A stretch of DNA of 64,000 nt from Phaeosaccion multiseriatum (GCA_965112735.1 OZ218962.1:310001-374000), one strand, 5' to 3'. Counted from the stretch's first letter, positions 10,751-44,883 are shown. Numbers and translations: made by a program. Notes: a model not told the origin generated them from the sequence alone.

Positions 10751-10797
<47 letters not shown>

Positions 10798-11067
10798 AGA
10801 GAGGAGAGAGACGGGGGGAGGGAGAAGAGAGAGAGAGCATAAGCATTAGCGCTAAAAGATCAGAACAGACCACTGAAGGAAAAAAAGGAGAAAGGAGTAG
10901 CGGAATCGGGATTTTCTCACCTCCTCCACCCTCCCGTCCGCCTGAGCGGACGCCAGGCCACCGGGGTTGGTGGCTTGCTTCAGAGCCACCGCCCTATCCA
11001 GCACATTCTTCCGGGTTATACCGCTGCTGGTACGGCCCCTCCTGTGTCTGTGTGCAGCAGCGGCCAT
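7119..11067 (-). CDS. Large low-complexity hypothetical protein (multi-exon)
   Basis: Co-oriented long ORFs 11067-10921, ~10620-9756 and 9365-7119 are separated by plausible GT-AG introns. There is a globular-looking stretch near the C-terminus (VVRIHGVGVEQITADVWALAEVRL...FVLQLTSPY). No family recognised and exon boundaries are approximate. Confidence 0.55.
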
Positions 11068-14466: not shown

Positions 14467-16565
14467 ATGGATGCCTCAAAGGGCAAGACCAAGGCCAATG
14501 GCCACGCCCCACGGGCTGAAACTCATACTGCTGATGCCGGGAAGCGTCTGGAGAAGCCGGAGCGGAATTCCAAGTTTAAGTTGAGCAAGACGCTCAGCGT
14601 GGCTTCTGCCGAGGCCATGAGGGAGAAGGTCCGAGCCCGCATCGGTGAGGAAGGAAAAGGCTCATTTTGCCCAAAAAGTTGGGGGGGGGGGGCAAGTAGG
14701 CCCAAGACAGACCCCCCAAGTTGGGGACCCAGTCGTGTGCCCAAGCCGCGACCATGGATGCGCCTCCCAAGCCTCCAGATGGCATCTCTCTGATATCTGT
14801 TTAAACTTTGCTCACCTTGTGCCCCCGTGTCTGCTTGTTTCTGTATGCCTATGTGTGTGCGTGTGCGCGCGCGCGCGTTTCCTTCGTTCCCGTCCGACAG
14901 CGAAACTGGAAGCGGCGAGGGCGGGCAAGCCCGACGCGACGGGGCGCAGGGGCGTGAAGCGCAACATGATGGCAGCAGCGGGGCAGCTCAAGCCCAAGGG
15001 GCACAAGAGAGACCTCAAGGGCAAGAGGGGCAAGGACAGCAAGGTGAGGGAGGCGGATGCGCACACACTACGTGGAGTCGATTGCCTGGAGCAGGGGTAG
15101 TGTTCTACTTTTGGTAGAGGCTGATTAGTGCGTGTCAGGGCAGCGGCAGCGGCAGCGGTTGGTTACACAGCGACCGCTGACCAACAGCATCGTCCGGTCC
15201 GGGGCACGAGAAGGGGGGATATATGCGTGTCTCTGTAGACAGCACCAAGGGCCTCTTTCGCACGGGTCAGGGCCAGGGTCAGGGTCAGGGTCAGGGTCAG
15301 GGTCAGGGTCAGGGTCATGGTCAGGGTCAGGGTCAGGGTCAGGGCCCGGTGCAGCGGTCCAGCTGTCCAGCGGGGGGGGGCGTCTGCGCTCGATCTGTTT
15401 CCGCGTCCACATGCTGCTTGCTTCTCCTTGCTTCACCTCAAGTATCTCTTGTGCTTTGTTGTTGCCCCGCTCCTGTGCCCCGCTCCTGTGCTCCGCTACT
15501 GTTGCCTGTGTGATGCCTCCCCCCCCCCTTCGCTGTCCGCTGCGCAGAAGAAGCTTGGGAACGGCAAGGAGAGCAAGGCAGCGGCAGCAGCTAACTCCAG
15601 CCTCCTGCAAGCCTACCGACCTGCCCCTGACGCGCACAAGGCAGCCGCCGCCCCGGTGGAGCTGCCCCCTCGCCCCTCTGTGAAGGACGTCGGGGACATT
15701 GAGTTCTCGGGCCTGAGGGTGGCGCAGCTCCATCACCCCAAGGGAGGGCTCAAGGCACCCGCCCCGGGCTCCAAGGTGAAGAAGCTCAAGGGTGAGTGAC
15801 GTCACGAGTGACGTGGGAGAGTATGGTCATAGTATGACGTCAGTGGTGACGACGTGTACGATGTACCAATGATATCTGTGGGGCTCTTCTCCGGTGGTGT
15901 GCGTGGGCCCATGTGGCGGAGTCTGATGCTAAGCTTCATACATACGTCCTTCCCTCCCGTGTCGTGATGCTTGTGTGTGTGTGTGTGTGTGCGCGTGTGT
16001 GTGTATATACATATATGTGTGTGTGTGTGAATCACAGGCATGCTTGCGAAGGCGGAGGAGAACCAGGCGCGCTTCCAGGCACTGAGGCAGACGGAGGACG
16101 GGAAGGCCAGTCTTGCCAAGGAGCAATGGAAGGACGCCATGCAGGGGGCGGGGGGGGTGGGAGCCAAGAATGATGCCTCCCTGCTGCGCAAGGCCATCAA
16201 GAGGAGGGAAAAGGCCAAGGTGGGTGAGGAGGGAGAGGGGAGGGGGTGGCGGGCCGAAACCGTTCCCTTGTCTGTGAAGAAGGACAAGTGGGAGGGTGTG
16301 GGGATTGTGCGGGCGTGCGTGTGTGGCTCTCGCGTGTTGGTGCTCTGTCTGTGTGCATCTATCGATCCGTCTGCGTTTTGCGCTGTGCCGGTGCTAACGA
16401 AGCCGCCCCTCCCCGTGGCCTTGCCCTCCCTCCCATTCCCTTCTGTCCGCTCTCCAGGCCAAGAGTGCAAGCGAATGGCAGGAGCGCGGCAAGAGCGTGG
16501 CGACGAGCATAAAGGGCAAGCAGAGCAAGAGAGAAGAGAACCTCAAGAAAAGGAAGATGGTCAGT

Positions 16566-16626
<61 letters not shown>

Positions 16627-17040
16627 CTTGCGTGCGCGCTCTTGTAGTCGTCCCCCCCCCCTTCCGCTCTCATATGCTCTCTCCCCTCCCTCCGCTCACC
16701 TCCAGCCCTCGTCTGTAGAGTCTGACTCCGTCACCCCCATTTTGTGTGTGTGTTTTTGTTCACGTGTTGTGTGTCTGCGCCCACACAGGGCGACGCCTAT
16801 GTACCTCCTGCGCCCCCCGCGGGGTCCGAGCCGCCCAAGAAGGAGGGCCGCAGGGGCAATCGCGCCGGCTTCGAGGGGAAGAAGAACGACTTTATCAACA
16901 AGGAGAAGGTCGGGGGGGGAGGGGGAGGAGGAGGAGGAGGAGGAGGTGGAGGGGGCGGGGGAAGGGGGGGAGGCAGGGGCGGCGGAGCGAGTGGAAGAGG
17001 AGGCAGAGGGGGAGGCCGGGGAGGAGGAGCGAGAAGATAG
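13290..17040 (+). CDS. SURF6: SURF6/RRP14 nucleolar ribosome-biogenesis protein (multi-exon)
   Basis: N-terminal RRP14-like FFSAMLEMIPEE and KKARYD. C-terminal SURF6 motifs: W..AM..A.G...KND.SLLRKAIKRREK.K.KS..EWQER, KREENLKKRK and RAGFEGK. RGG-rich tail ends at 17040. Confidence 0.9.
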
Positions 17041-17270
17041 GCGTGTGAGGTCCAGCGGAAGCAAGGACGTGCGCGGAGGGCTTTGGCTGAGCAGCGGTGC
17101 GGCTTGGGAGGCGATGTGCTGCATAGCGGTGGTAGAGGGGTGGGAGCTCGTGCTTCCAAGGCCCTGGGCGGTTACTTTCCTCGTGTGGCGTGCGGGGCTG
17201 TGTGTTGGCGGGCGTATCGAATAGCGAAGGACAGAAGAGTCCCACACATACACATCGACCCCTGACGTGC

Positions 17271-17412
17271 TATTATGCTATCTGCTATCGCCGGCGCCAG
17301 CCGGCGTGCTATCTGCTATTGCCGGCGCCAGCCGGCGTGCTATGTGCTATCGCCGGCGCCAGCCGGCGTGCTATGTGCTATCGCCGGCGCCAGCCGGCGT
17401 TTTGTGCTATTC
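17271..17412 (+). repeat. Left subterminal tandem repeats (~31-bp unit, gctatcgccggcgccagccggcgtgctatct/gt, 4-5 copies)
   Basis: Directly visible tandem array adjoining the left TIR. Confidence 0.9.
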
Positions 17413-17664
17413 GCCCCCCCGGGGTCGGGGGTGGGAGGGTGCGCGTGCGGGGGGCTAGGAGCGGAGGAAGCAACTCACACGTGTTTCATTGCCATTAATT
17501 CGCGTCAGTTCTTGTATAGTATGCCTAAGGGAGTATATCAAGGTCCACCCTCTGCCTGGCCTGGCTGACCTGCTGCCCGTGCACCCCTACCTCTCCGCCC
17601 TGTGATTGACTGGCTCTCCGCTAGCTCAGCCGGCGGACGGCCCGATCGACATTGTGCTCGCCAA

Positions 17665-20600
17665 TCAGTCACTTTTACCACTAGGGCAGGCAGCATTCAC
17701 TCCGTCACAATACCAGTCCCCTTCAGGAAGCGTAGAGAGGGGAGGGGTCAGGCAGTACGTGTGAAACTCCTCATCGCAGCCGTCACATAGCAACATTTTG
17801 TCGTGGTCAACATCTTTCTGACAGACTAGACATGCAGTGGCTTCGCTGGAGCTAGAGTCTGCTGCTTTTGCCGTGCCACGAGACAAAGCCCCATAACTCT
17901 CGGGCTTGTTTACCGTGCGCCCACGTGAGGACATCGCCCCCACCACCTTTCCGATGATGTTCTTGCGCAGTGTTCTCAGGTTCAGCGCCTCCTGCTCGCC
18001 ATCACTGCTATCGTCCTCAGACATGTCCTCTCCCATGTGCACGCTTGGGTCGGGGGGGGCGTATCCCATCGCCTTGGCCACCTCTTGGCCCTCCGCCTCT
18101 CTGTTGACAATCTGCTTGCACTCCTCGTGCTGCTCCTCCGTGATGGCAAACCTCCGAAGCCTTCTCTGCGCGCACACCCCTCCTGAAGCTGCATGTGAGC
18201 CTTCGATGTACATTGCTTCGTGGTAGCGGGGCAATGCGCCATAAATGGCAGCACAAGACACAGAAGCCTCTTTCCCGCCGTCGACTTCGTAGACGACTGC
18301 TGCAGCCCCATCCCCGTCCTGGGACTCGTCGGTAGAGTCCTGTTCAGCGACGTGAAAGTATGAAACACCAGGCTTTGCCGGAACCACCTTCTGCTTGGAG
18401 CCTCGTCCCTTCTTCGAGACGATCACCTCCTTCCGAAGATCGACGCGAAGCTGTGCAAGAAAAAAGCTCTCCTCCGACCCCTTGTCTGCCCTGACTATCA
18501 CAACGTCATTTGCCCTGTAGAGAATGCGAGTTCGGACGGATTCACCGGTCTTCCGTCCTTTCTGTCCGCGCTTCCTCGCTCCCGAGCTCTCATGCAAGCG
18601 CGACAGGTATCCACTCGGGTCGTTGCTTTGCGCAGAGTTGGGAGCAAACGCCACCGAACGCGGGGCCGCTCCAACATTGTACTTCCTCTTGTTGGTTACA
18701 CGCTGCTGCGGAACCTTCCTAAGACGAGCCGCCGCATTGCGAAGCGTCTGCGTGTCCTTCTTGCGCTGCTTCCGTTGCCCTTCGTCAAGCTTCTCCGCTA
18801 CCCTTGGTCGCTTCAACACGGGTGAAGCCACCAATCTGCTCTCGTTTTGCTCCAGCTGGTATCCCGCCCTGAGCTTTCGACCGCTGCTGTTGACGCTGCT
18901 TGTGCAGTAGGCAAAACCCATGCTGGGGTTGGCCTTCTTCGCAGCCTCAAGCATCACAAGGCCCCTTCTTCGGGCATACTCAAGAGCGTCTGGAACATCC
19001 TGGCGGCCTTCCCTTTGCTTCGTGAAGAAAGTCTCAACATTGAGGGTCAAAACGCTCCTCATCTGCATCTTCTCCACGATGCCGCGAGGCACTCCCTGCT
19101 GACGGAAATGAGCGAGGAAGCATCAAGCAAGGAGCGAACAGCGAAGCCGTGAGACGAAAGGGCAAGGCTGATTTCCAAACGCACGCGCCCACGGACACGG
19201 ACATTTTTACTCACGCACTCACGCACACACACGCACACAGCCATGGGGAGCACCCCCTTCTCACCTCTGCAAGCATCCGATGTAGCATCCGAGGTAGTGC
19301 CTGCAGGCTCGCCTTGATAGCACCTCGAACTTCGCGTGATGGCATTCCTTCAGGGCCCTGGAGAGAGACCAGGGATTTGCCTGTGGCAGCTGATATCGCT
19401 TTCCCCATGTGACTGAGAGCCAAGTCGACCACATGAAGCTTGGCAATGCTCTCCTCCATCGTGCGTGCGTTGTTTTGCATGTCTTTGCCATTCTCATCCA
19501 AGTCTTCGCCCTGGAGCTGATACGCCTCACTCAACATCCGTTGTAGTGGGATGAGGTGCTGGGCGTAGACGTAGCAGTCCGAGATCATTCGAATGCACTG
19601 GTTTCCAGTGTCGGACAAGAAGAAAACGTTGTACACGAAGCAGCCGAACGTAGGTCTGAACAAAGGTACTTTCGATGCCGTACCGCTGGCAGTGCTCTCT
19701 CCGGGTTCTGTGTTTCCCTGTCCGCCCATCAGCACGGATGATCCCTTCCAGCTTAGCACCCCACTGTCACGACGAAGGAGAACCTTGACAAGCGCATGCA
19801 AACCTTCATCTAGCATGAGGATGACGATCATATCTTCATCATCGTATGCACCGGGTGGGGCCAACGTGAGTCCACAAGGCTGAGTCCCCACGTGAGACTT
19901 CACGCACGTGAGGTGTGCGCGCCTTGGCTTCTCAACAGTACCATCTTCCTCGTCATCAGTCAGAGCCATGAGTGTATCTCCGTCATTGCCACTGCCACCC
20001 TCTGGTCCTCCGGCACGTTCCACATTGCCCTCCCAGACAAAAAGCGAGCTGTCGGCGATGCAGGCAACGCAGTCATGCGAGAGTGCTGTGAGGCCCGCAG
20101 GTCCCTTGGGTAGGTCACACAGCTTCTCGCTCACAGGTGCAAAAGGGTTGCCAGCGTCAAATGAGAGCCGGTGTAGTGCTCCCCCCCCGCCAGGTTCCTC
20201 TTGGGTGACAAAGAGGTCGAACGCGCGCTCAGAGGACACGGCAAGCGCAATGGCAACGGGGCAACGGATGCCCTCCTCTTCTCTCTCCTCGAGGACATTC
20301 TCCTCAGAAGTGCAACGCTCCTGGATCCGACGGACCAAGGGCACTGCCTTCAAATTCAAATGCCGTTGCTGAGTCTGTCTCCCCCGACCACGCGCTGCTA
20401 CATGCCCGTCCGGTTGCTGGTCGTCGTCATCATCATCGTCGCCCTCCTCCGCCGCCGCGCGGGGTCCCCTGTTTCCTGGAAGAGCGGCCAGCACATGCAC
20501 CACCCAAATCTGATTCGCTCCACTGTCACACATGTACACGTAGTCGCCAACCACGACGAGAGACCCAAGACTCTGGAAGCAGTCGTCTCGCAGAACAACC

Positions 20601-22947
20601 TCTGTGGTACAAGGCACATGATGGGCCTTGAGCATGCGCAGATGCCTGCCTGAACGATCGGCGTTGAAGATCATGCCAGAGCCATGATGGTAGCCCATAC
20701 CAGTCGGCTTCTGAGTCTGCGAGGCCATGTTCTGATGCCAGAAACCCCACGGCTCCGGGCACACGGTCACCCCCACGAGAGCACGGCGCTTCTCCCGCTC
20801 CTCCTCTGAGAGTAGAGCCAACTGCAGAGACGCCGTCGTAACAGCGATTGCGCTCTCCACTGAGAAAGGATCCTTGTTTTCAATGGCGTCAAGGCCAACA
20901 TTGGCTTGTACTGCTTCACTTCGAGCCGGGTCCAGATCGTGGAATCTGGCGCGAAGAGTTCGCAGTCCGACTAGCCAGCCCTGGCAGACGACCCACCAAT
21001 TGAATGTCGTAGCACGAACACACTTTACAAGGTGAGCCCCGTCAGGCAGTGCCTCATACCACCCCAGGGGGTCGTCCTCTCCGAGGGTTCTTGCCGCCAT
21101 TTTCCGAATGAAGGCAAGCTGTGCGCCATTACAGTCTGTTGAGATGCACAATGGTCGGAGACTCTTGCACACGAGCCCTTTCCTCTTGCACCTCGAGCAG
21201 ACTCTGCTGGAGAACTGAGTCGCGCAAACGCACTCACTTTCACCGCAAGGACCCTCCCCTCCGGTGGGACAAGCTTGGTGGCAATCACACGCCTCGCCCA
21301 TCTCCACCCACGAGGGGTTCTCCCCCGTCAGAATCCGCTGCCAGAAAAGCTCGAGACAAGGGATGCAAACACGCAGCGCCTTCATGATTTCGGTCACGCT
21401 CGCGGCAACACTTTTGTAGTCACCCCCTGCGGTGTGAAGCTGAAAACCGATGGAGCCCGTGTATGCCCCTTTCAGATCCATCATCATAACTTCCATCATC
21501 TCGGAACCCAGCTTAGGTGCGTCCTCGTCTCGCAGCTGGAACAGAACGAGTAGCGATAAGGGAGGGTTGACAGGAGGCGAAGCAAAGGCGGGGCTGCAGC
21601 GTGAGCGAGCGAGCGAGGAGGCGTGATTAAGATTGACGATGGATCAACAGTGATTCTGCCCCGAAAGATCAGTGGGAAGGAGGGGACGCCACGCACCTGA
21701 GCATCAGACTTTTCCAGTATTGCCTTCGCCTGCTCCAGTGTTGTATTTCCAAACTGATGTGCATTGCCCCAATTGGTTTGGCTGGTTGTATCAGTATGAT
21801 GGCCCTTGGCAATGACGAAGCCATCCATTTTGACAGTCACGGGAACCACAATCTTCTCGTTGCCTTTGTCGCCAAGAGTGTAGGCTTGGTCGGCACAGAA
21901 GCGGGCGAAGACATTGACGACGTTGATAATGTCTTCGACTTGCAGACCGTACCTCTTGATTAGGCCAGGCCTGCGCCTAATGAGTGCTCTCGGATGAAAG
22001 CCGCCTGTGTTCGCCCTGCGGAAGTAGTCCTTCATGGCCTGGTCCCTGGAGACGTTGGGGCCACGAACCTTCTTTCTGCGGGGTGCCCCATAGGAGAGCA
22101 TGGAGCATGCTGAACCAAATACGTTCTGCTGGGTCTCATTAAACTGTCGCAGCGTCTCGTAGCCATTGAGCTGCTTGCTCGCGGCCACAGTCTGACGCCT
22201 GGACCAAAGGCCGCTGTTCATGACCCAACGATGCACCGTTTGATACATGAAGTGACTCCGAGTAAAGTGCCCTCGATCAAGATGGAATTGGATCGCAAAG
22301 GGAACAATGTCGACATCGTTTACGTCCCGGGTAAGCTCTACACGCCCGCTGTCCGCGTCTTCCGTCACAGCCACCCGCCCATGGTCTTCTTCTGTCGCGG
22401 ACGAGCCCGCGGCGCCCATCGCCTTTGTTTGTGGCCAAATGTGAAACGGCAGAATCTTTATTGGCTTACAGCTGGCTGGGCCCATGGCTGGGCCCCACTG
22501 GTTCAAAAGTCCTTCATGTCTGGCCGCGATGGAGGGAGGAGTTGGGGGGGGGGGGGCGACTACTACAACAGCAGGAGAGGCACGCCAAGTCCAGTTGGCA
22601 GCAGGAGTCGGAGCCGGGAGAAGGCCCCTGAGAGGGCGAGGAGAGGGAGGAGTGCCAGCAGGAGTTGGAGCAGGGAGAAGCACAGTGAGAGGAGGAAGCG
22701 AGGGAGAAATGCCAGCAGGAGTCAGAGTAGGGGGAAGGACACCGAGAGGAGGAGGGCAGGGAGAAGTACCAGCAGGAGTCGGAGCCGACCCAGATCCGGA
22801 GGAGGAGGAGGGAGGAGGGAAGGAGAAAAGGGTCGAAGCAAAGGGAGACGGGGCCGCAGTCCCAGCGAAAGAGGATTCCCAGCAGGCGCGAGGAAAATGC
22901 GTCGGAACCAAAGTCCCAGCGACAGGGGAGTACGCCGAAGCAGCCAT
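17665..22947 (-). CDS. Multi-domain P-like DDE transposase with Cys-rich insert, NHL-like beta-propeller insert, BAH-like segment and C-terminal PHD finger; 3 exons
   Basis: Exons 22947 (or 22485)-21697, 21535-19265 and 19095-17665 join in phase 0 through GT-AG introns. Motifs: VTVKMDG (D at 21823-21825), CISTDC (D at 21134-21136), PDGAHLVKCVR (DxxH), KDPFSVESA, LTLNVETFF..R....P..LEY (E at 19033-19035). PHD: CLVC..LLCDGCDEEFHTYCLTPPL..PEGDWYC. Confidence 0.8.
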
Positions 22948-24445
22948 TCACAACACGCTTCTCACGAGCTGGGGTGGGAGGAGGGGGGGCGGCTTGAGGA
23001 CACCTATCTCCAGAGTACGGCAACCTTGGCATCGTCTTCTGAGGCACAAGACTTCGATTATGCCTTGCCCCTGAGTGCAGGGATGGGACAGGCAAAACCT
23101 ACCCCTCTCATGTTCGCGCATGTGGGGACATTTCCAAGAGGATGCCTCAACCCCGTCGAGGCTGATTTCAGTCTCGGCACATCGGTGTCCTGCAACACGA
23201 CCGAGCTCTTCGAGACCTTGCCCTACACGTTCCAGCTGGCTAATGAAGACAAGCGATTCTCCAGCTTCAAGGCCTTCCGTGGACATTTGACCAGCGAATT
23301 GCTCTTTCAGACGGAACAAAAGAAGAACGACATCACGATCAGAGCCTCCACGGCATTCAGACGTGGCAGAGGGTTGGATACAATCCGCGACGACGTCTCC
23401 CTGCGCCGCGTGGTACGTGTCGGGTACAACTGCCTCTCGATGTTTGTGCATTGTCTGCTACGGCAGCAACCCTTTCTTAAACCCGCCCCCCCCGCCCCTC
23501 TCTGTCTCTTTCTCCAACACACACCCAATACAGGTGCGCTCGTTCTACACTTTCCCTCCGGGCCGTATCGATCCCGACAAACGGTGGAGACTGGATCTGT
23601 ACTGCGAGCTACGCCCGAAATCAGGGGCGAGACAGCAGGAGAACGTGCAAATTTGCCTGTCTTTCCCTACCCAATCTCTGGACAGCGCCACAGATTTTTC
23701 GACCCATACCCCACCCAAGAAGGCAGGTCATCGAGGTGGTGCTGCCCGTGTCAGTGAGACCACCAGTGATAGTGAGGGAGAGAGTGCCGGCGGGACGAAA
23801 GGCGGGAAGGCGGGGCAAGAGGGGGCACTGACGAAGAAGGCGAAGAGCTGGCTCCACGCGCAAGGAACCAAGTTCTTTTATCTTTTGCGGGAAATGCCTG
23901 ATGTGGAGATGCAAACTCTCAGCGGAAGCAAGGTCGGTGATGCAGCAAGCTTCGTGAAGATCCATACGCCAGCTTTGATTCAGCTTGAGGCCAAAGCGAA
24001 CTTCTCCATCAGACACGCCAGAACATCATTGGATATGCTGGTATCTGTTGTGTGCACCAGGCCTGCTTGTCAGAGCGCCGGGAAGGGCAAGTACAAGCCT
24101 CAGTGGACTCATTTGTCTGGCGTTAAGCGCCACAGAGACTCCCACTCATCGAGCGGTCAGAAAAGCATGCAAGCTGCACTCTCTCACTTCCTACTGAAGA
24201 CGGCGTTGGGGAAGCAGGAGGAGGAGGAGCAGGAGGAGGAGGAGGAGGAGGAGGATGATGGTGGTGGTGATGATGATGATGAGGAGGAGGAGGAGGAGGA
24301 GGAGGAGGAGGAGCAGGAGGGGGAGGAGGAGGAGCAGGAGGAGGAGGAGGAGGAGGAGCAGGAGGGGGCAGCAGCCCTTCTTCCCACCAGAAGAAAAGCA
24401 GGGCCATGCCTGCGGCACAATCAGTGGCCGAAGCTGAGCAGCTGA
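22516..24445 (+). CDS. Transposon accessory protein, N-terminal part: RS-rich repeats, unknown domain, C2H2/BED-like finger, acidic tract
   Basis: ATG at 22516. A GT-AG intron at 23413-23533 joins the 22231-frame and 23363-frame ORFs in phase 0. CTRPAC...HLSGVKRHRDSH is a candidate finger, followed by poly-Glu. Confidence 0.55.
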
Positions 24446-25317
24446 CAGGGGACATGAAGGCGAGGCTGCTTGTCCTCGGCGCTGAGCAGGACATGCACAA
24501 GGAAAAGGGGGAGTACACCTCCTTCTTTTTGGACGCGATGATGACCACTGTATCCGTGAACGGAAACAGGGCACTACTCCCGTGCGCGTCTCTTGGTCAC
24601 ATTTTCAACCCAGCTGTGGAGAACTCCCCCATGCCCAACGTGTTGGCGACGGCTCCGAAAGGGTTCCTGCCGAAAGGTTACAGGGAGTCTGGTCTTACAA
24701 TGACGAAGTGTGAGCTCCTCGTCCTCCCTGCGAGTTTCAGCGGCCATTTCTCGACTGTCGCTGTCCTTCTACCTACCTCTGCAGCTAGTGACGACGGGGA
24801 GGGTGCTATGGCGTACATTCTGCACTTTGATACGGTCCGAAATGGGCGCCTCGGTCACCACCCTTCGAAGCGAGTGCTCCAAGCGACGCAGGTGTATGTG
24901 GAGAAGGTCATGGAGGACGAAAGAGCCCCTGGGACGGCAGCCCTCCGATTCCGGCAGGTCTTTGTTGGTGTGCCACAGCAGAAGGCCGGCTCGAATTCTT
25001 GCGGTCCGGCAACAGCTCTATTCATGTCGAAATTGGCTGTGGCAGACACCAGCCCCGTGCGCAAAGTGCTCTATGGTGTTGAGCAAGACAACAGCTGGGA
25101 AAGGGACGACGGTGTAGCGATTTTGTCTAGTGCGGCGGGGGCAAAGAAGGAGACCGTGGACCGCTTCTTGGCCGCGTGTGGGCTGCCGTGTCTGACCTGC
25201 GAAGAGTATGAGGCAGAGAGAACTCGCCTCTTTCGGGCGTACCTGAGCTCCGGGATGCGCAACGGTTCCTTGCCCGACGTTTACAACTCGGCCTTGCATA
25301 AGTGCGTCCTGGGTTAG
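24406..25317 (+). CDS. Ulp1/SENP-like (peptidase C48) cysteine protease carried by the transposon
   Basis: Catalytic residues in C48 order: LVLPASFSGHFSTVAV (His), YILHFDT (Asp), VPQQKAGSNSCG (oxyanion Gln and Cys). Confidence 0.8.
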   Translation: MPAAQSVAEAEQLTGDMKARLLVLGAEQDMHKEKGEYTSFFLDAMMTTVSVNGNRALLPCASLGHIFNPAVENSPMPNVLATAPKGFLPKGYRESGLTMTKCELLVLPASFSGHFSTVAVLLPTSAASDDGEGAMAYILHFDTVRNGRLGHHPSKRVLQATQVYVEKVMEDERAPGTAALRFRQVFVGVPQQKAGSNSCGPATALFMSKLAVADTSPVRKVLYGVEQDNSWERDDGVAILSSAAGAKKETVDRFLAACGLPCLTCEEYEAERTRLFRAYLSSGMRNGSLPDVYNSALHKCVLG

Positions 25318-25485
25318 TGAAGGAGAGATGGCTGCCTCGCGAGAGAGGGAGATGGGGGGAGAGGGGAACGCCAAGGTTCGCCCAGTCACCATTGTATTGG
25401 TAATATAAGACTGAAGGCTCGCATACTCTCTGCGCTCGACGTATGCTGATTAGGCAGGCAGCTAGGAGTGGAAAGGCTGTCGCAG

Positions 25486-25615
25486 GGCGTCTGCTATCGC
25501 CGGCGCGACGGGGCGTGCTATCTGCTATTCGCCGGCGCCAGCCGGCGTGCTATCTGCTATTCGCCGAGTGCAAATAGCATGCTATTGGGCGCCGGGGCGC
25601 CCAATAGCATGCTAT
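25486..25615 (+). repeat. Right subterminal repeats plus a perfect 20-bp hairpin
   Basis: gctat(t)cgccggcg units occur in the same orientation as the left array. atagcatgctattgggcgcc-gg-ggcgcccaatagcatgctat spans 25574-25615. Confidence 0.9.
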
Positions 25616-25765
25616 CGCAGATAGCATAATAGCACGTCAGGGGTCGAATACACAGTGGCGCTCAAGAGTTAAGCAAAGTATAGACCTGTAGTCGATGATG
25701 TTAATGACAGTACCGCCGACGAGTACATTGTAGCCGTAGCCGCTCCATCGTCGGCCGTACTGTGG

Positions 25766-25926
25766 AGGTTCCAGGGCTCCGCCGTCGTGGCCCTGCAGGA
25801 GGCGGCCGAGGCCTACCTCGCGGGACTTTTCGAGAACACCAACCTGTGCGCCATCCACGCCAAGCGCGCTACCATCATGCCCAAGGGCATTCAGCTGGCC
25901 CGCCGCATCCGAGGAGAGAGGAGCTG
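25766..25926 (+). pseudogene. 5'-truncated, degenerate histone H3 fragment
   Basis: [53 protein letters not shown] is the H3 C-terminal half. It has changes at normally invariant sites (LVG>LAG, EDTN>ENTN, RVTI>RATI, PKDI>PKGI) and no N-terminal half upstream. Confidence 0.88.
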
Positions 25927-26496
25927 AATGCCTTCTTCCTTTGACGTCTTGTGTGATGAGCATCGAGTAGGCTCCTGAGACGAGAGAGATGTCAACTCAT
26001 TTTTGTCTACCGACTGCCACCGCACGCACGACAGAGCAAACAAACCCCTTGACCCCATTGAGACACTTTCACTTTTATTTGGAAGGGAGGAAGGAAGAGT
26101 CATTGGACGGAGGGGTGTGGAGCGGAGACTTGTATATATATACAGAGAAGAGCGCCTTCAAGCTACAGCGCTGCCGCATGCTCCTCCTCTCGGGCAGCAG
26201 AGAGAAGAAGCTCTGATGCAGCTCTCCCTTCTCCTCATGCTACCGCTACTGCTCCTCAGCTCCTCTTCCTCCTCCCACTGCTGTTGCTGCCGGAATGGGT
26301 GGCAGCAACGGGTCGGAGGCGACCGACACGGGAGACTCCACCCCTCGCAACAAAAAGCAATCCGGTCGTTTTACGCCCATTCTCCAGCGCGCTACATATA
26401 TATATACAGTGCTTCTAGTGCTTCTCTCGTTTCACGGGTGGTGTTGAGAAAACACCAGTTGTTTTTTGCTCCGTGCCGCAGCCGTTGAGTGCGTCT

Positions 26497-27530
26497 CTAT
26501 TTCTTGGCAGCTTTGGTCGTCTTGTTGATGAGACTCTTGTGGATATGAGGGATGACTCCTCCACCCGCAATGGTCGCCTTGATGAGCGTGTCCAGCTCCT
26601 CGTCTCCCCTAATGGCGAGCTGCAAATGGCGGGGCGTGATACGCTTCACCTTGAGATCCTTGCACGCGTTTCCGGCCAGCTCCAGCACCTCGGCAGTCAG
26701 GTACTCGAGAATGGCGGCGGTGTACACGGCAGAGGTCGCTGTCAGGAAGAGACGAGGGGAGGGAGACAAGTGAGGGGACGGGGTCAGCCCAGAGAAAGAG
26801 ACAGCCAAGAGAGAGCATCAGCAGCAACAGGAATAGCTTCTCCCTTCTCTCCGGAGCGTGGCATCGCCCCCCCCACCCCCCTAGGCCTCTCACCTCCGAC
26901 TCGCTGGTGGGAATGAACGCGCGACTTGAGGAATCGGTGAATACGTCCCACGGGGAATTGCAGTCCGGCCCTGGAGGACCTCGACTGCGGGTTCTTCTTG
27001 GAGGTGGGTCCCTTTCCTCCCTTTCCTCCCTTGCCTCCTTTTCCTCCCTTGCCTCCGGACTGTGGGAATGACGAACGAGAGGAGGTCAGCGGAGGGAGCA
27101 TGATTAGGAAGCTTGCATCGCTCCAAGGTGAGCGAGGACGTGCGGGGCGTAGGGCACAGAGGCTGCAGCGTTCCTAACCCTAACGGCCACAAATCATCAA
27201 CCCCCGTAAGTTCTTCGAGCGGCGTTGCTGCGGGGGGGGGGGGCACAATCTCAAAACTGAACGCCTCCGCAAGCGCAGCCCCTCCTACACACAAGACACT
27301 CATCCGTAAAGGCAAGTCTAGCTGCGTGTGCAGGCATCCCCCAAAGGGCGCAAGCACAGCACAGTCCTTCCCACGCAGAGATGAAGGTGCGCGGCGCGCA
27401 GGGCAAGAGGCAGCGTTCCTCCCCCGCCCCCAAACGGCAAATCTCAAATCCCCCCTTCCCGTGACAGCAACGCTGCTCCACGATGGCACATAAGCGCACA
27501 CAGCGCAGCCCCCCAGCAGCGTCTTACCAT
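26497..27530 (-). CDS. H2A.Z: Histone H2A.Z; 3 coding exons
   Basis: ATG-only exon 27530-27528, exon 27059-26894 ([20 protein letters not shown]) and exon 26738-26497 ([68 protein letters not shown]). These are H2A.Z-diagnostic residues. Confidence 0.97.
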
Positions 27531-44005: not shown

Positions 44006-44307
44006 ACTCGCCCCCGGGTGCCGCGTTTGGAATCCACAACCACAACGGGTGATGATGTCGACGTTTCTGTGATTTTTGGGCCACCAACACGCAAACTGGC
44101 CTTCCTCCCCCTTTGATTTGATATCCTCTCAACACTTTTTAAAGGAGGATCAAAGGAGAAGGAGCTGTGCTGCAGGTGGAGATGGTGTCCTTGCTTCCGC
44201 AGATAGGTAGAAGTTCTTCCCCAAAGGAAGCAGGCTCAGTCGTATGGAGAGAGGAGAGGAAAGGCACGTGTCAGGGACTCGAAGGGACGAGGTGGTCGCC
44301 TCCAACT

Positions 44308-44826
44308 TCGGCCCCGTGCACGCCTAGCGGCCTAGGCCTATTTTGGAAAATTGCCCGGCCTAGCGAGGGCTGTAGGCCCTCGGCCTATTTATAGGCCGCC
44401 TAGGCGGCGGCCTAGGCGGGGGCCGGAGGCCCGCGGCCTAGGGCAGACGCCAACTAGGCGCAGGTCCAGGGCGGGAATAAGCTCGTATGCCCCTGGGCTG
44501 GCCCGGAACCCGCCCAAGTGTCGTCAGTTTTAAGCAAATGTATTGCATGGGATAAGTGAGGAGTAGACTTGGTTCGTGTTGTCTCTTTCCGCCTCGCTGG
44601 CCCTACGAGGAGTGCAGGCCTACAGGTGTGCTGCTACCCACTGGCTGGGCGGCACCACGCACGCGCCCACGGTCTGGGAGGCTGCCTAGAGGCGGGCTAA
44701 GGCCGCCTAGGGCTGAAAAGTGAGCGGCCTAGAGCGGCCGGAGGCCGCCGGCCTAGGCCTATTTCAGCCGAAGGCCGAGCGGCCTAGCGGCCTAGAGCCT
44801 AGGCCGCTAGGCGTGCACGGGGCCGA
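44308..44826. mobile_element. 519-bp MITE / non-autonomous TIR element
   Basis: TIR TCGGCCCCGTGCACGCCTAGCGGCCTAGGC (44308-44337) is the exact reverse complement of 44797-44826. TCCAACT flanks both sides (44301-44307 and 44827-44833). Many internal GGCCTAG/CCTAGG motifs; no coding capacity. Confidence 0.93.
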
Positions 44827-44829
44827 TCC

Positions 44830-44883
44830 AACTATCGAACTATCGAACTATCGAACTATCGAACTATCGAACTATCGAACTAT
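44830..44883. repeat. 8-bp tandem repeat (aactatcg, ~6.7 copies) starting within the MITE's right TSD
   Basis: Directly visible. Confidence 0.9.

Follow-up and report, generated by a model that had tools for sequence, protein, structure and literature searches.

A stretch of 64,000 nucleotides of the Phaeosaccion multiseriatum genome (GCA_965112735.1, OZ218962.1:310001-374000), analysed as a whole and called the window below, contains an 8.4-kb element bounded by terminal inverted repeats (TIRs) and a target-site duplication. Two divergent coding units occupy its interior, a transposase gene on the minus strand and, on the plus strand, a second gene (gene 2) that ends in a candidate Ulp1-like cysteine protease. 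The element is real and complete. It is best explained, with a probability of about three in four, as an autonomous cut-and-paste DNA transposon from a distinct clade that is distantly related to the P superfamily (P element, THAP9). The GC content of the window is about 59%. The features of the element, together with a miniature inverted-repeat transposable element (MITE) elsewhere in the window, are as follows (ORF, open reading frame).

17248-17254, no strand: left 7-bp target-site duplication ATACACA, identical to 25648-25654
17255-17285, plus: left TIR, beginning with TCGACCCC (repeat search; read contigs of other copies break at 17255)
17276-17400, plus: left subterminal array of four to five 31-bp direct repeats (repeat family, enriched in GCTAT)
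17665-22419, minus: transposase gene, three exons, 1474 amino acids (ORFs joined, relatives aligned across the junctions)
22596-22785, no strand: 57-bp tandem repeat in three copies, between the divergent genes (repeat search)
23363-24445, plus: upstream part of gene 2, with a zinc-finger-like C..C..H..H motif (24053-24145) and an acidic (GAG)n tract (about 24205-24365) (ORF; similar in the related contig L002)
24406-25317, plus: candidate Ulp1/C48-like cysteine protease part of gene 2, an ORF of 303 amino acids (motif order, atlas features, relatives)
25485-25615, plus: right subterminal repeats and palindrome (repeat search, GCTAT/ATAGC count)
25617-25647, minus: right TIR, 31 nt (repeat search)
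25648-25654, no strand: right 7-bp target-site duplication ATACACA, identical to the left copy
44301-44833, no strand: 519-bp non-autonomous MITE (44308-44826) with TCGGCCCC ends, its own arrays of the GGCCTAG motif and the 7-bp duplication TCCAACT (window scan)

Element ends and copies

The window contains exactly two occurrences of the perfect 31-nt TIR, TCGACCCCTGACGTGCTATTATGCTATCTGC, one at 17255-17285 (plus) and the other at 25617-25647 (minus). They are free of mismatches, and 100 shuffled controls gave no match. At 95% complementarity the inverted repeat reaches 37 nt. Both element ends are directly flanked by ATACACA. The duplication is 7 bp long, because the eighth base outwards differs between the two sides.

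Each unit of the left subterminal array has two GCTAT motifs and a GC-rich palindromic part. The right subterminal region contains two repeat units (25485-25560), oriented as on the left, and a 20+20-nt palindrome at 25574-25615 that is rich in ATAGC/GCTAT. The pentamer GCTAT/ATAGC occurs 10-11 times per terminal 200 bp, as against 0.5 times per kb in the 8-kb interior, an approximately 100-fold difference. These arrays are presumed to be the binding sites of the transposase. Thus perfect 31-bp TIRs, 7-bp flanks, subterminal repeat arrays, atypical TCG termini and two divergently oriented coding units, all listed in an initial annotation of this DNA, were borne out, the termini in the form TCGRCCCC.

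The whole window was scanned for inverted repeats with TC..CC/GG..GA ends and a duplication of at least 5 bp. Only two elements were returned, the 8.4-kb element and the 519-bp MITE, both with 7-bp duplications. A (CGAACTAT)n microsatellite directly follows the MITE, starting at about 44834.

A related complete element is found in a metagenome contig of 10,965 bp (L001); its transposase exon (P0001) shares 32% identity with the counterpart in the window element. It has perfect 23-nt TIRs, which also begin with TCGGCCCC (87-109 and 10791-10813), its own subterminal repeats, the same divergent layout of two genes, a PHD finger and a protease. The terminal octamer TCGRCCCC is common to the window element, the MITE and the L001 element, whereas the end sequences are otherwise unrelated and the subterminal motifs differ. 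This combination would fit a conserved cleavage site with family-specific binding sites.

Evidence for further copies comes from read contigs of four runs of one sample. Several contigs break exactly at 17255 and then run into different flanks; therefore the boundary of the element is fixed and other insertion sites are revealed. Words from the interior are about 5 (X2) to about 12 (X4) times as deep as the contig bridging the left flank, and those from the terminal 200 bp are about 20 times as deep as the interior, as would be the case if the ends are common to many non-autonomous relatives. Compared with the window copy, each of the four runs has an additional C in an intron, after 19252, and the exchange A>G at 19626 (V878A); several near-identical copies therefore exist. 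The presence of such copies with other flanks supports recent activity, in line with the recent insertion suggested initially, and the element was probably active recently or is still mobile. Being a near-perfect multi-copy two-gene element with defined ends, it might be used for insertional mutagenesis in its host.

In some read contigs (17255-17320) the same subterminal repeats adjoin variant terminal repeats, TCGACCCCTGACGCGCTGTC and TCGACCCCTCACGCACTATC, which points to sister subfamilies within one genome.

The transposase and its family

The exons of the transposase gene are at 22419-21697, 21535-19265 and 19095-17668, and the stop codon is at 17667-17665. The intron borders are GTGCGT..CAG and GTGAGA..CAG. 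The three-exon model is supported, because intronless relatives align without gaps over both splice junctions, as in the case of a conserved E-G-x-P that straddles 998|999.

An exhaustive HMMER search with exon 2 yielded 103 cluster representatives (clusters at 50% identity) among 1.84 billion proteins. All of them are unnamed proteins from metagenomes or genome assemblies. A word-indexed homologue search with the 762-amino-acid exon and a scan of metagenome loci with one of the family alignments (A5) found nothing. Uncharacterised cluster representatives of the AlphaFold DB match nearly the whole of a 1191-residue structural model described below, A7RQ69 with an E-value of 1e-43 and three others at about 1e-28. 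The relatives sit on contigs with GC fractions from 0.38 to 0.59, and some of them carry PB1 or SAP domains (SAP in P0071). The clade is broad and unnamed, and Pfam has no model for it. With 103 clusters it is large, and its description would improve repeat annotation and gene prediction in many eukaryotes.

Identical genes for one distant member, a protein of 1475 amino acids with an N-terminal PB1 domain (P0035), occur in two NCBI assemblies and in an ENA metagenome. The corresponding contigs (L003, L004, L005) are AT-rich, with GC fractions of 0.38-0.39, and the gene occupies positions 2028-6455 of L003.

Conservation was read across 35 long relatives, single positions being counted in 27 or 28 relatives. 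The conserved residues are D199 (KMDG), nine cysteines within 298-364, D375, the triple D406, H409 and K412 (PDGAHLVK), and E1019 (LNVETFF..R). The spacing in the window transposase is D-176-D-644-E, and the D..D..DxxH..E core proposed from the single sequence is thus retained across the family alignment. The parts of the protein, from the N-terminus to the C-terminus, are given here with their alignment to the P element transposase.

21823-21825, minus: catalytic D199 (KMDG), predicted on strand beta-1 of the RNase H fold; 28 of 28 relatives; aligns to D230 of the P transposase
21182-21364, minus: cysteine-rich insert with nine conserved cysteines, between the first two catalytic aspartates (alignments; confident in the AlphaFold2 model)
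21032-21136, minus: D375 (21134-21136) and D406xxH409..K412 (PDGAHLVK); invariant; aligns to D303 and SDTPHLIK of the P transposase
19577-20779, minus: six-bladed NHL beta-propeller, within the insertion domain between DxxH and the catalytic glutamate
19033-19035, minus: catalytic E1019 (LNVETFF..R); 25 of 27 relatives; aligns to E531 of the P transposase in VEHFFGSMR
18106-18531, minus: conserved beta-rich C-terminal domain (alignment, AlphaFold2 model, profile and atlas searches)
17704-17832, minus: PHD finger at the C-terminus of the transposase (Pfam PF00628, E 1e-11, 45.1 bits with a cut-off of 24)

Residues 100-1290 of the closest full-length relative (P0006, 33% identical) were modelled with AlphaFold2 from a 99-row alignment, giving a mean predicted local distance difference test score (pLDDT) of 85.8 and a predicted template modelling score of 0.79. 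In the model the first aspartate (D1) lies on the long first strand, the second (D2) just after the fourth strand, and DxxH at the start of a helix after the fifth. Then comes a large insertion in which the propeller is flanked by helices, and the glutamate lies on a later helix. This order of elements would fit an RNase H-like fold with an insertion domain. A single-sequence prediction of exon 2 was uninformative (pLDDT 35).

The propeller in the insertion domain has six blades and is of the NHL type; fold searches of the model confirmed it as the beta-propeller of the initial annotation. In all 24 long relatives with an aligned catalytic glutamate, 507-610 residues separate the histidine of DxxH from this glutamate. 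The cysteine-rich insert follows the family pattern CxxC..C..CxxCx6C..CxxCx6C and weakly matches fungal Zn2Cys6 domains (LEU3, E 0.6). The PHD finger, likewise noted at the outset and confirmed by Pfam, recurs in two relatives (P0002, P0003) and in the L001 element. It was the only Pfam match among six large ORFs of the window; those of 762, 483 and 303 amino acids have no match at E-values up to 10. On the other hand, the earlier description of the beta-rich domain as BAH-like is not supported. There is no match to the Pfam BAH model (PF01426) and no PDB match with the profile of the domain (A4), and the atlas leads are weak (0.77) and spread over PWWP, BAH, Agenet and Tudor domains.

The protease gene

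The 303-amino-acid ORF of gene 2 contains candidate protease residues, namely His in SGHFS, Asp in HFDTV, Gln in VPQQ and Cys in NSCGP. Their order is typical of Ulp1-type proteases and is kept in three elements. In a comparison of language-model features (the atlas) the ORF scored 0.95 with 183 shared features, and 72 of the 100 nearest clusters were Peptidase_C48. It has no match to the corresponding Pfam model (PF02902) at E-values up to 10, its two-sequence profile has no match in the PDB, and a word-indexed homologue search returned nothing. When proteins were searched with the same profile, the L001 protein and one close relative were the sole matches. Thus a relationship to Ulp1 proteases, as assigned initially, is suggested by the order of the motif residues and by the language-model features, but not by Pfam or solved structures.

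The partner ORF of L001 stands in the same position next to a TIR, has the same motifs and is 30% identical to the window protease (E 9e-11). Another protease partner, in convergent orientation, was found in L002, the contig that encodes P0006, and it is preceded by a similar Cys/His motif and acidic tract. Judging by these sequences, distant relatives also pair the transposase with the protease gene, which is therefore a conserved partner and not a recent or chance capture. Hence the word cargo, applied to it initially, is misleading.

Accessory domains of the Ulp1 and PHD types are known from Ginger1 and from Mutator-like transposons (KI-MULEs) (PMC2836005). In these systems, too, a transposase is combined with an Ulp1-type protease and sometimes with a PHD finger. 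However, the protease there is usually fused to, or captured by, an integrase-like or MULE transposase, whereas in the window it is encoded by a separate and highly diverged gene next to that of a P-related transposase. By analogy, the occurrence of Ulp1 pairings across superfamilies suggests that the SUMO/ubiquitin pathway is used recurrently in transposition. With the conserved pairing of transposase and Ulp1-like protease, the part that SUMO/ubiquitin proteases have long been suspected to play in transposition becomes directly testable.

Placement of the element

Profiles of the two halves of the core were compared with the PDB (177,635 sequences). The best match of the N-terminal profile (A2) is the Drosophila P element transposase (6p5a, E 0.093), and the alignment covers D230, D303 and SDTPHLIK. 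The independent C-terminal profile (A3) has a sole match, again 6p5a (E 1.1), in which vvEhfFsvmRs is aligned to IVEHFFGSMRS at E531. The catalytic residues of the P transposase are named in the literature (PMC7776569). It is hard to ascribe to chance that two separate profiles meet the same chain, in colinear order, at three catalytic residues. Besides, the Pfam model TNP-like_RNaseH_N of P and THAP9 transposases (PF21787) matches 5 of 26 family members, with the best E-value of 3.6e-5; the three matches inspected score 13.5-17.7 bits, below the cut-off of 24.6. The relationship to P elements suggested initially is favoured by two lines, the top match among solved structures for both halves, with weak E-values, and the sub-threshold Pfam matches.

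Further likeness to the P superfamily (P element, 1360/Hoppel, Galileo, THAP9) is seen in the anatomy of the protein and of the element. There is a DDE RNase H core with D(2)H about 30 residues after the second aspartate: the distance is 25-36 residues in most members of the family and 33 in the P element of D. buzzatii (PMC3698922). A large domain is inserted between beta-5 and the glutamate helix, and the glutamate motif is of the EHFF..MR type. The 7-bp duplication is within the 7-8 bp of the superfamily and is the same as in 1360 and Galileo (PMC3698922). As in the P element, 31-bp TIRs are accompanied by subterminal sites that are presumably bound by the transposase, and MITE partners are known for P.

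The differences are also considerable. The window element lacks a THAP domain and a recognisable GTP-binding domain, and carries instead the NHL propeller in the insertion domain and, towards the C-terminus, the beta-rich domain and the PHD finger. The distance from D1 to D2 is about 170 residues (162-187 in most long relatives) as compared to 73 in P, because the cysteine module is inserted there. The distance from the histidine to the glutamate is about 520 residues (507-610 in the relatives) as compared to about 190 in P (PMC7776569). The transposase is twice as long as that of P, and a second conserved gene encodes the Ulp1-like protease. A related clade that has a propeller at the same position and has dropped THAP is a natural object of comparison for the P transposase.

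These differences could mean that the clade is a separate lineage at the level of a superfamily, sister to P and Dada among the DxxH transposases, with its likeness to P being an ancestry shared by the whole group. Indeed, the missing THAP and GTP-binding domains, the different termini and the different spacing of the catalytic residues agree with this, as do the scores of the Pfam P-family matches, every one of which is below threshold, and the octamer TCGRCCCC, which is the clade's own and is kept even where transposases are only 32% identical. However, both halves of the core pick the P transposase and no other, though the PDB also holds Hermes (hAT), Transib, RAG1 and Mu-type transposases. 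Moreover, the glutamate motif (EHFF..MRS) and the DxxHxxK motif are strikingly P-like, and the 7-bp duplication fits P. Thus a separate lineage seems rather unlikely. There is a substantial chance, though well below even, that specialists would rank the clade as a separate superfamily.

Several observations weigh against the distant relationship to P and against parts of the reconstruction. The E-values that link the two core halves to P are weak (0.093 and 1.1). No Pfam model of P or THAP9 reaches its gathering score in the family, and the window ORFs have no match to these models. Neither the window ORFs nor 14 long relatives have a THAP domain according to Pfam, in agreement with the initial annotation, and the Pfam model of the P/THAP9 GTP-binding domain has no match. 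In fold searches with the whole model (pdb, pdb_via_wide, afdb_swissprot, atlas, afdb_clusters) all matches were dominated by the propeller, which swamped the structural comparison of the core with P. The element ends in TCGRCCCC, unlike the CA-type ends of P. No splice joints occur in the read contigs over the element, which behave as DNA. No duplication was found in the flanks of the L001 element; this may reflect chimeric metagenome assembly. Finally, the two ORFs of gene 2 differ in frame, and neither a donor site nor an evident GT..AG intron lies between them (about 24360-24410). Gene 2 of the window copy may be broken or frameshifted; the alternative is an unusual intron through the (GAG)n tract.

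Dada elements have a DDE core with DxxH, long multi-exon transposases and 6-7-bp duplications, and they target tRNA and snRNA genes (Kojima and Jurka 2013, PMC3706591). The window element resembles them in the DDE core with DxxH and in the long multi-exon transposase: those of Dada are about 1400 amino acids long, have introns and can carry inserted domains (PMC3706591). Its 7-bp duplication is within the range of Dada. However, Dada elements lack TIRs and are strictly confined to small-RNA genes, whereas the window element has 31-bp TIRs and is inserted in ordinary sequence, with no small-RNA gene in the flanks. The Dada transposase has the spacing D-68-D-176-E, compared to D-176-D-644-E here, with a CCCC finger at the N-terminus and a CCHC finger at the C-terminus. 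In the published alignment of Dada the D1 (DGM) and glutamate (EHFF-type) motifs of the family are absent, and DxxH reads LDSFH. Membership in the Dada superfamily is very improbable, and this placement was rejected on anatomy and motifs.

It is barely credible that the locus is an inactive relic or a host gene cluster resembling a transposon, as the possible frameshift in gene 2 of the window copy is set against perfect TIRs and duplication, an open three-exon frame in which all catalytic residues are preserved, the several near-identical copies in other flanks, and the matching MITE.

Kolobok, hAT, MULE, Transib, CACTA, PIF and piggyBac were set aside, since no solved transposase other than that of P is among the profile matches and the lengths of the duplications differ in the standard classification.

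For a cut-and-paste transposon distantly related to P, the following mechanism may be proposed. The three-exon gene would produce a DDE transposase of 1474 amino acids with an RNase H-like core, which would bind the GCTAT arrays near each end and cleave at the conserved TCGRCCCC termini. Insertion with a 7-bp stagger would then create the 7-bp duplication. The beta-rich domain and the PHD finger probably read chromatin and may thus contribute to targeting. Gene 2, the conserved partner gene, would encode a zinc-finger/acidic protein with the Ulp1-like cysteine protease at its end. Probable substrates of the protease during transposition are repair or silencing factors of the host in the form of SUMO or ubiquitin-like conjugates. 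We infer loss of GTP dependence and present-day activity.

A bolder version of this proposal is possible, though we would rather bet against it. The element might be the founding and still active member of a widespread unnamed DxxH clade of superfamily level, represented in algae, cnidarians, molluscs and other organisms. The propeller might replace the GTP-sensing insertion domain of P or lie within it, the PHD finger and the beta-rich domain might read chromatin, and an obligatory Ulp1-like partner might strip silencing or repair factors of the host of their SUMO-type marks at the site of transposition.

P elements are curated in Chlamydomonas reinhardtii, where excision and insertion of P-2_cRei have been observed (PMC9977147). 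Thus cut-and-paste elements classified as P exist and are active in a GC-rich green alga. No published description of the architecture of the Chlamydomonas P elements was found in the literature, nor did literature full texts mention an NHL propeller, a PHD finger or an Ulp1 partner in connection with a P-related transposase. The architecture reported here is distinctive, conserved and, judging by these full texts, apparently undescribed.

No clear host exon is seen at the insertion site when the flanks 15500-17254 and 25655-27400 are joined. With the element removed, an open stretch of 233 amino acids runs over the junction on the minus strand and has no recognisable protein character. The region of the 57-bp repeat (22596-22785), which separates the two divergent genes, contains several open frames on both strands.

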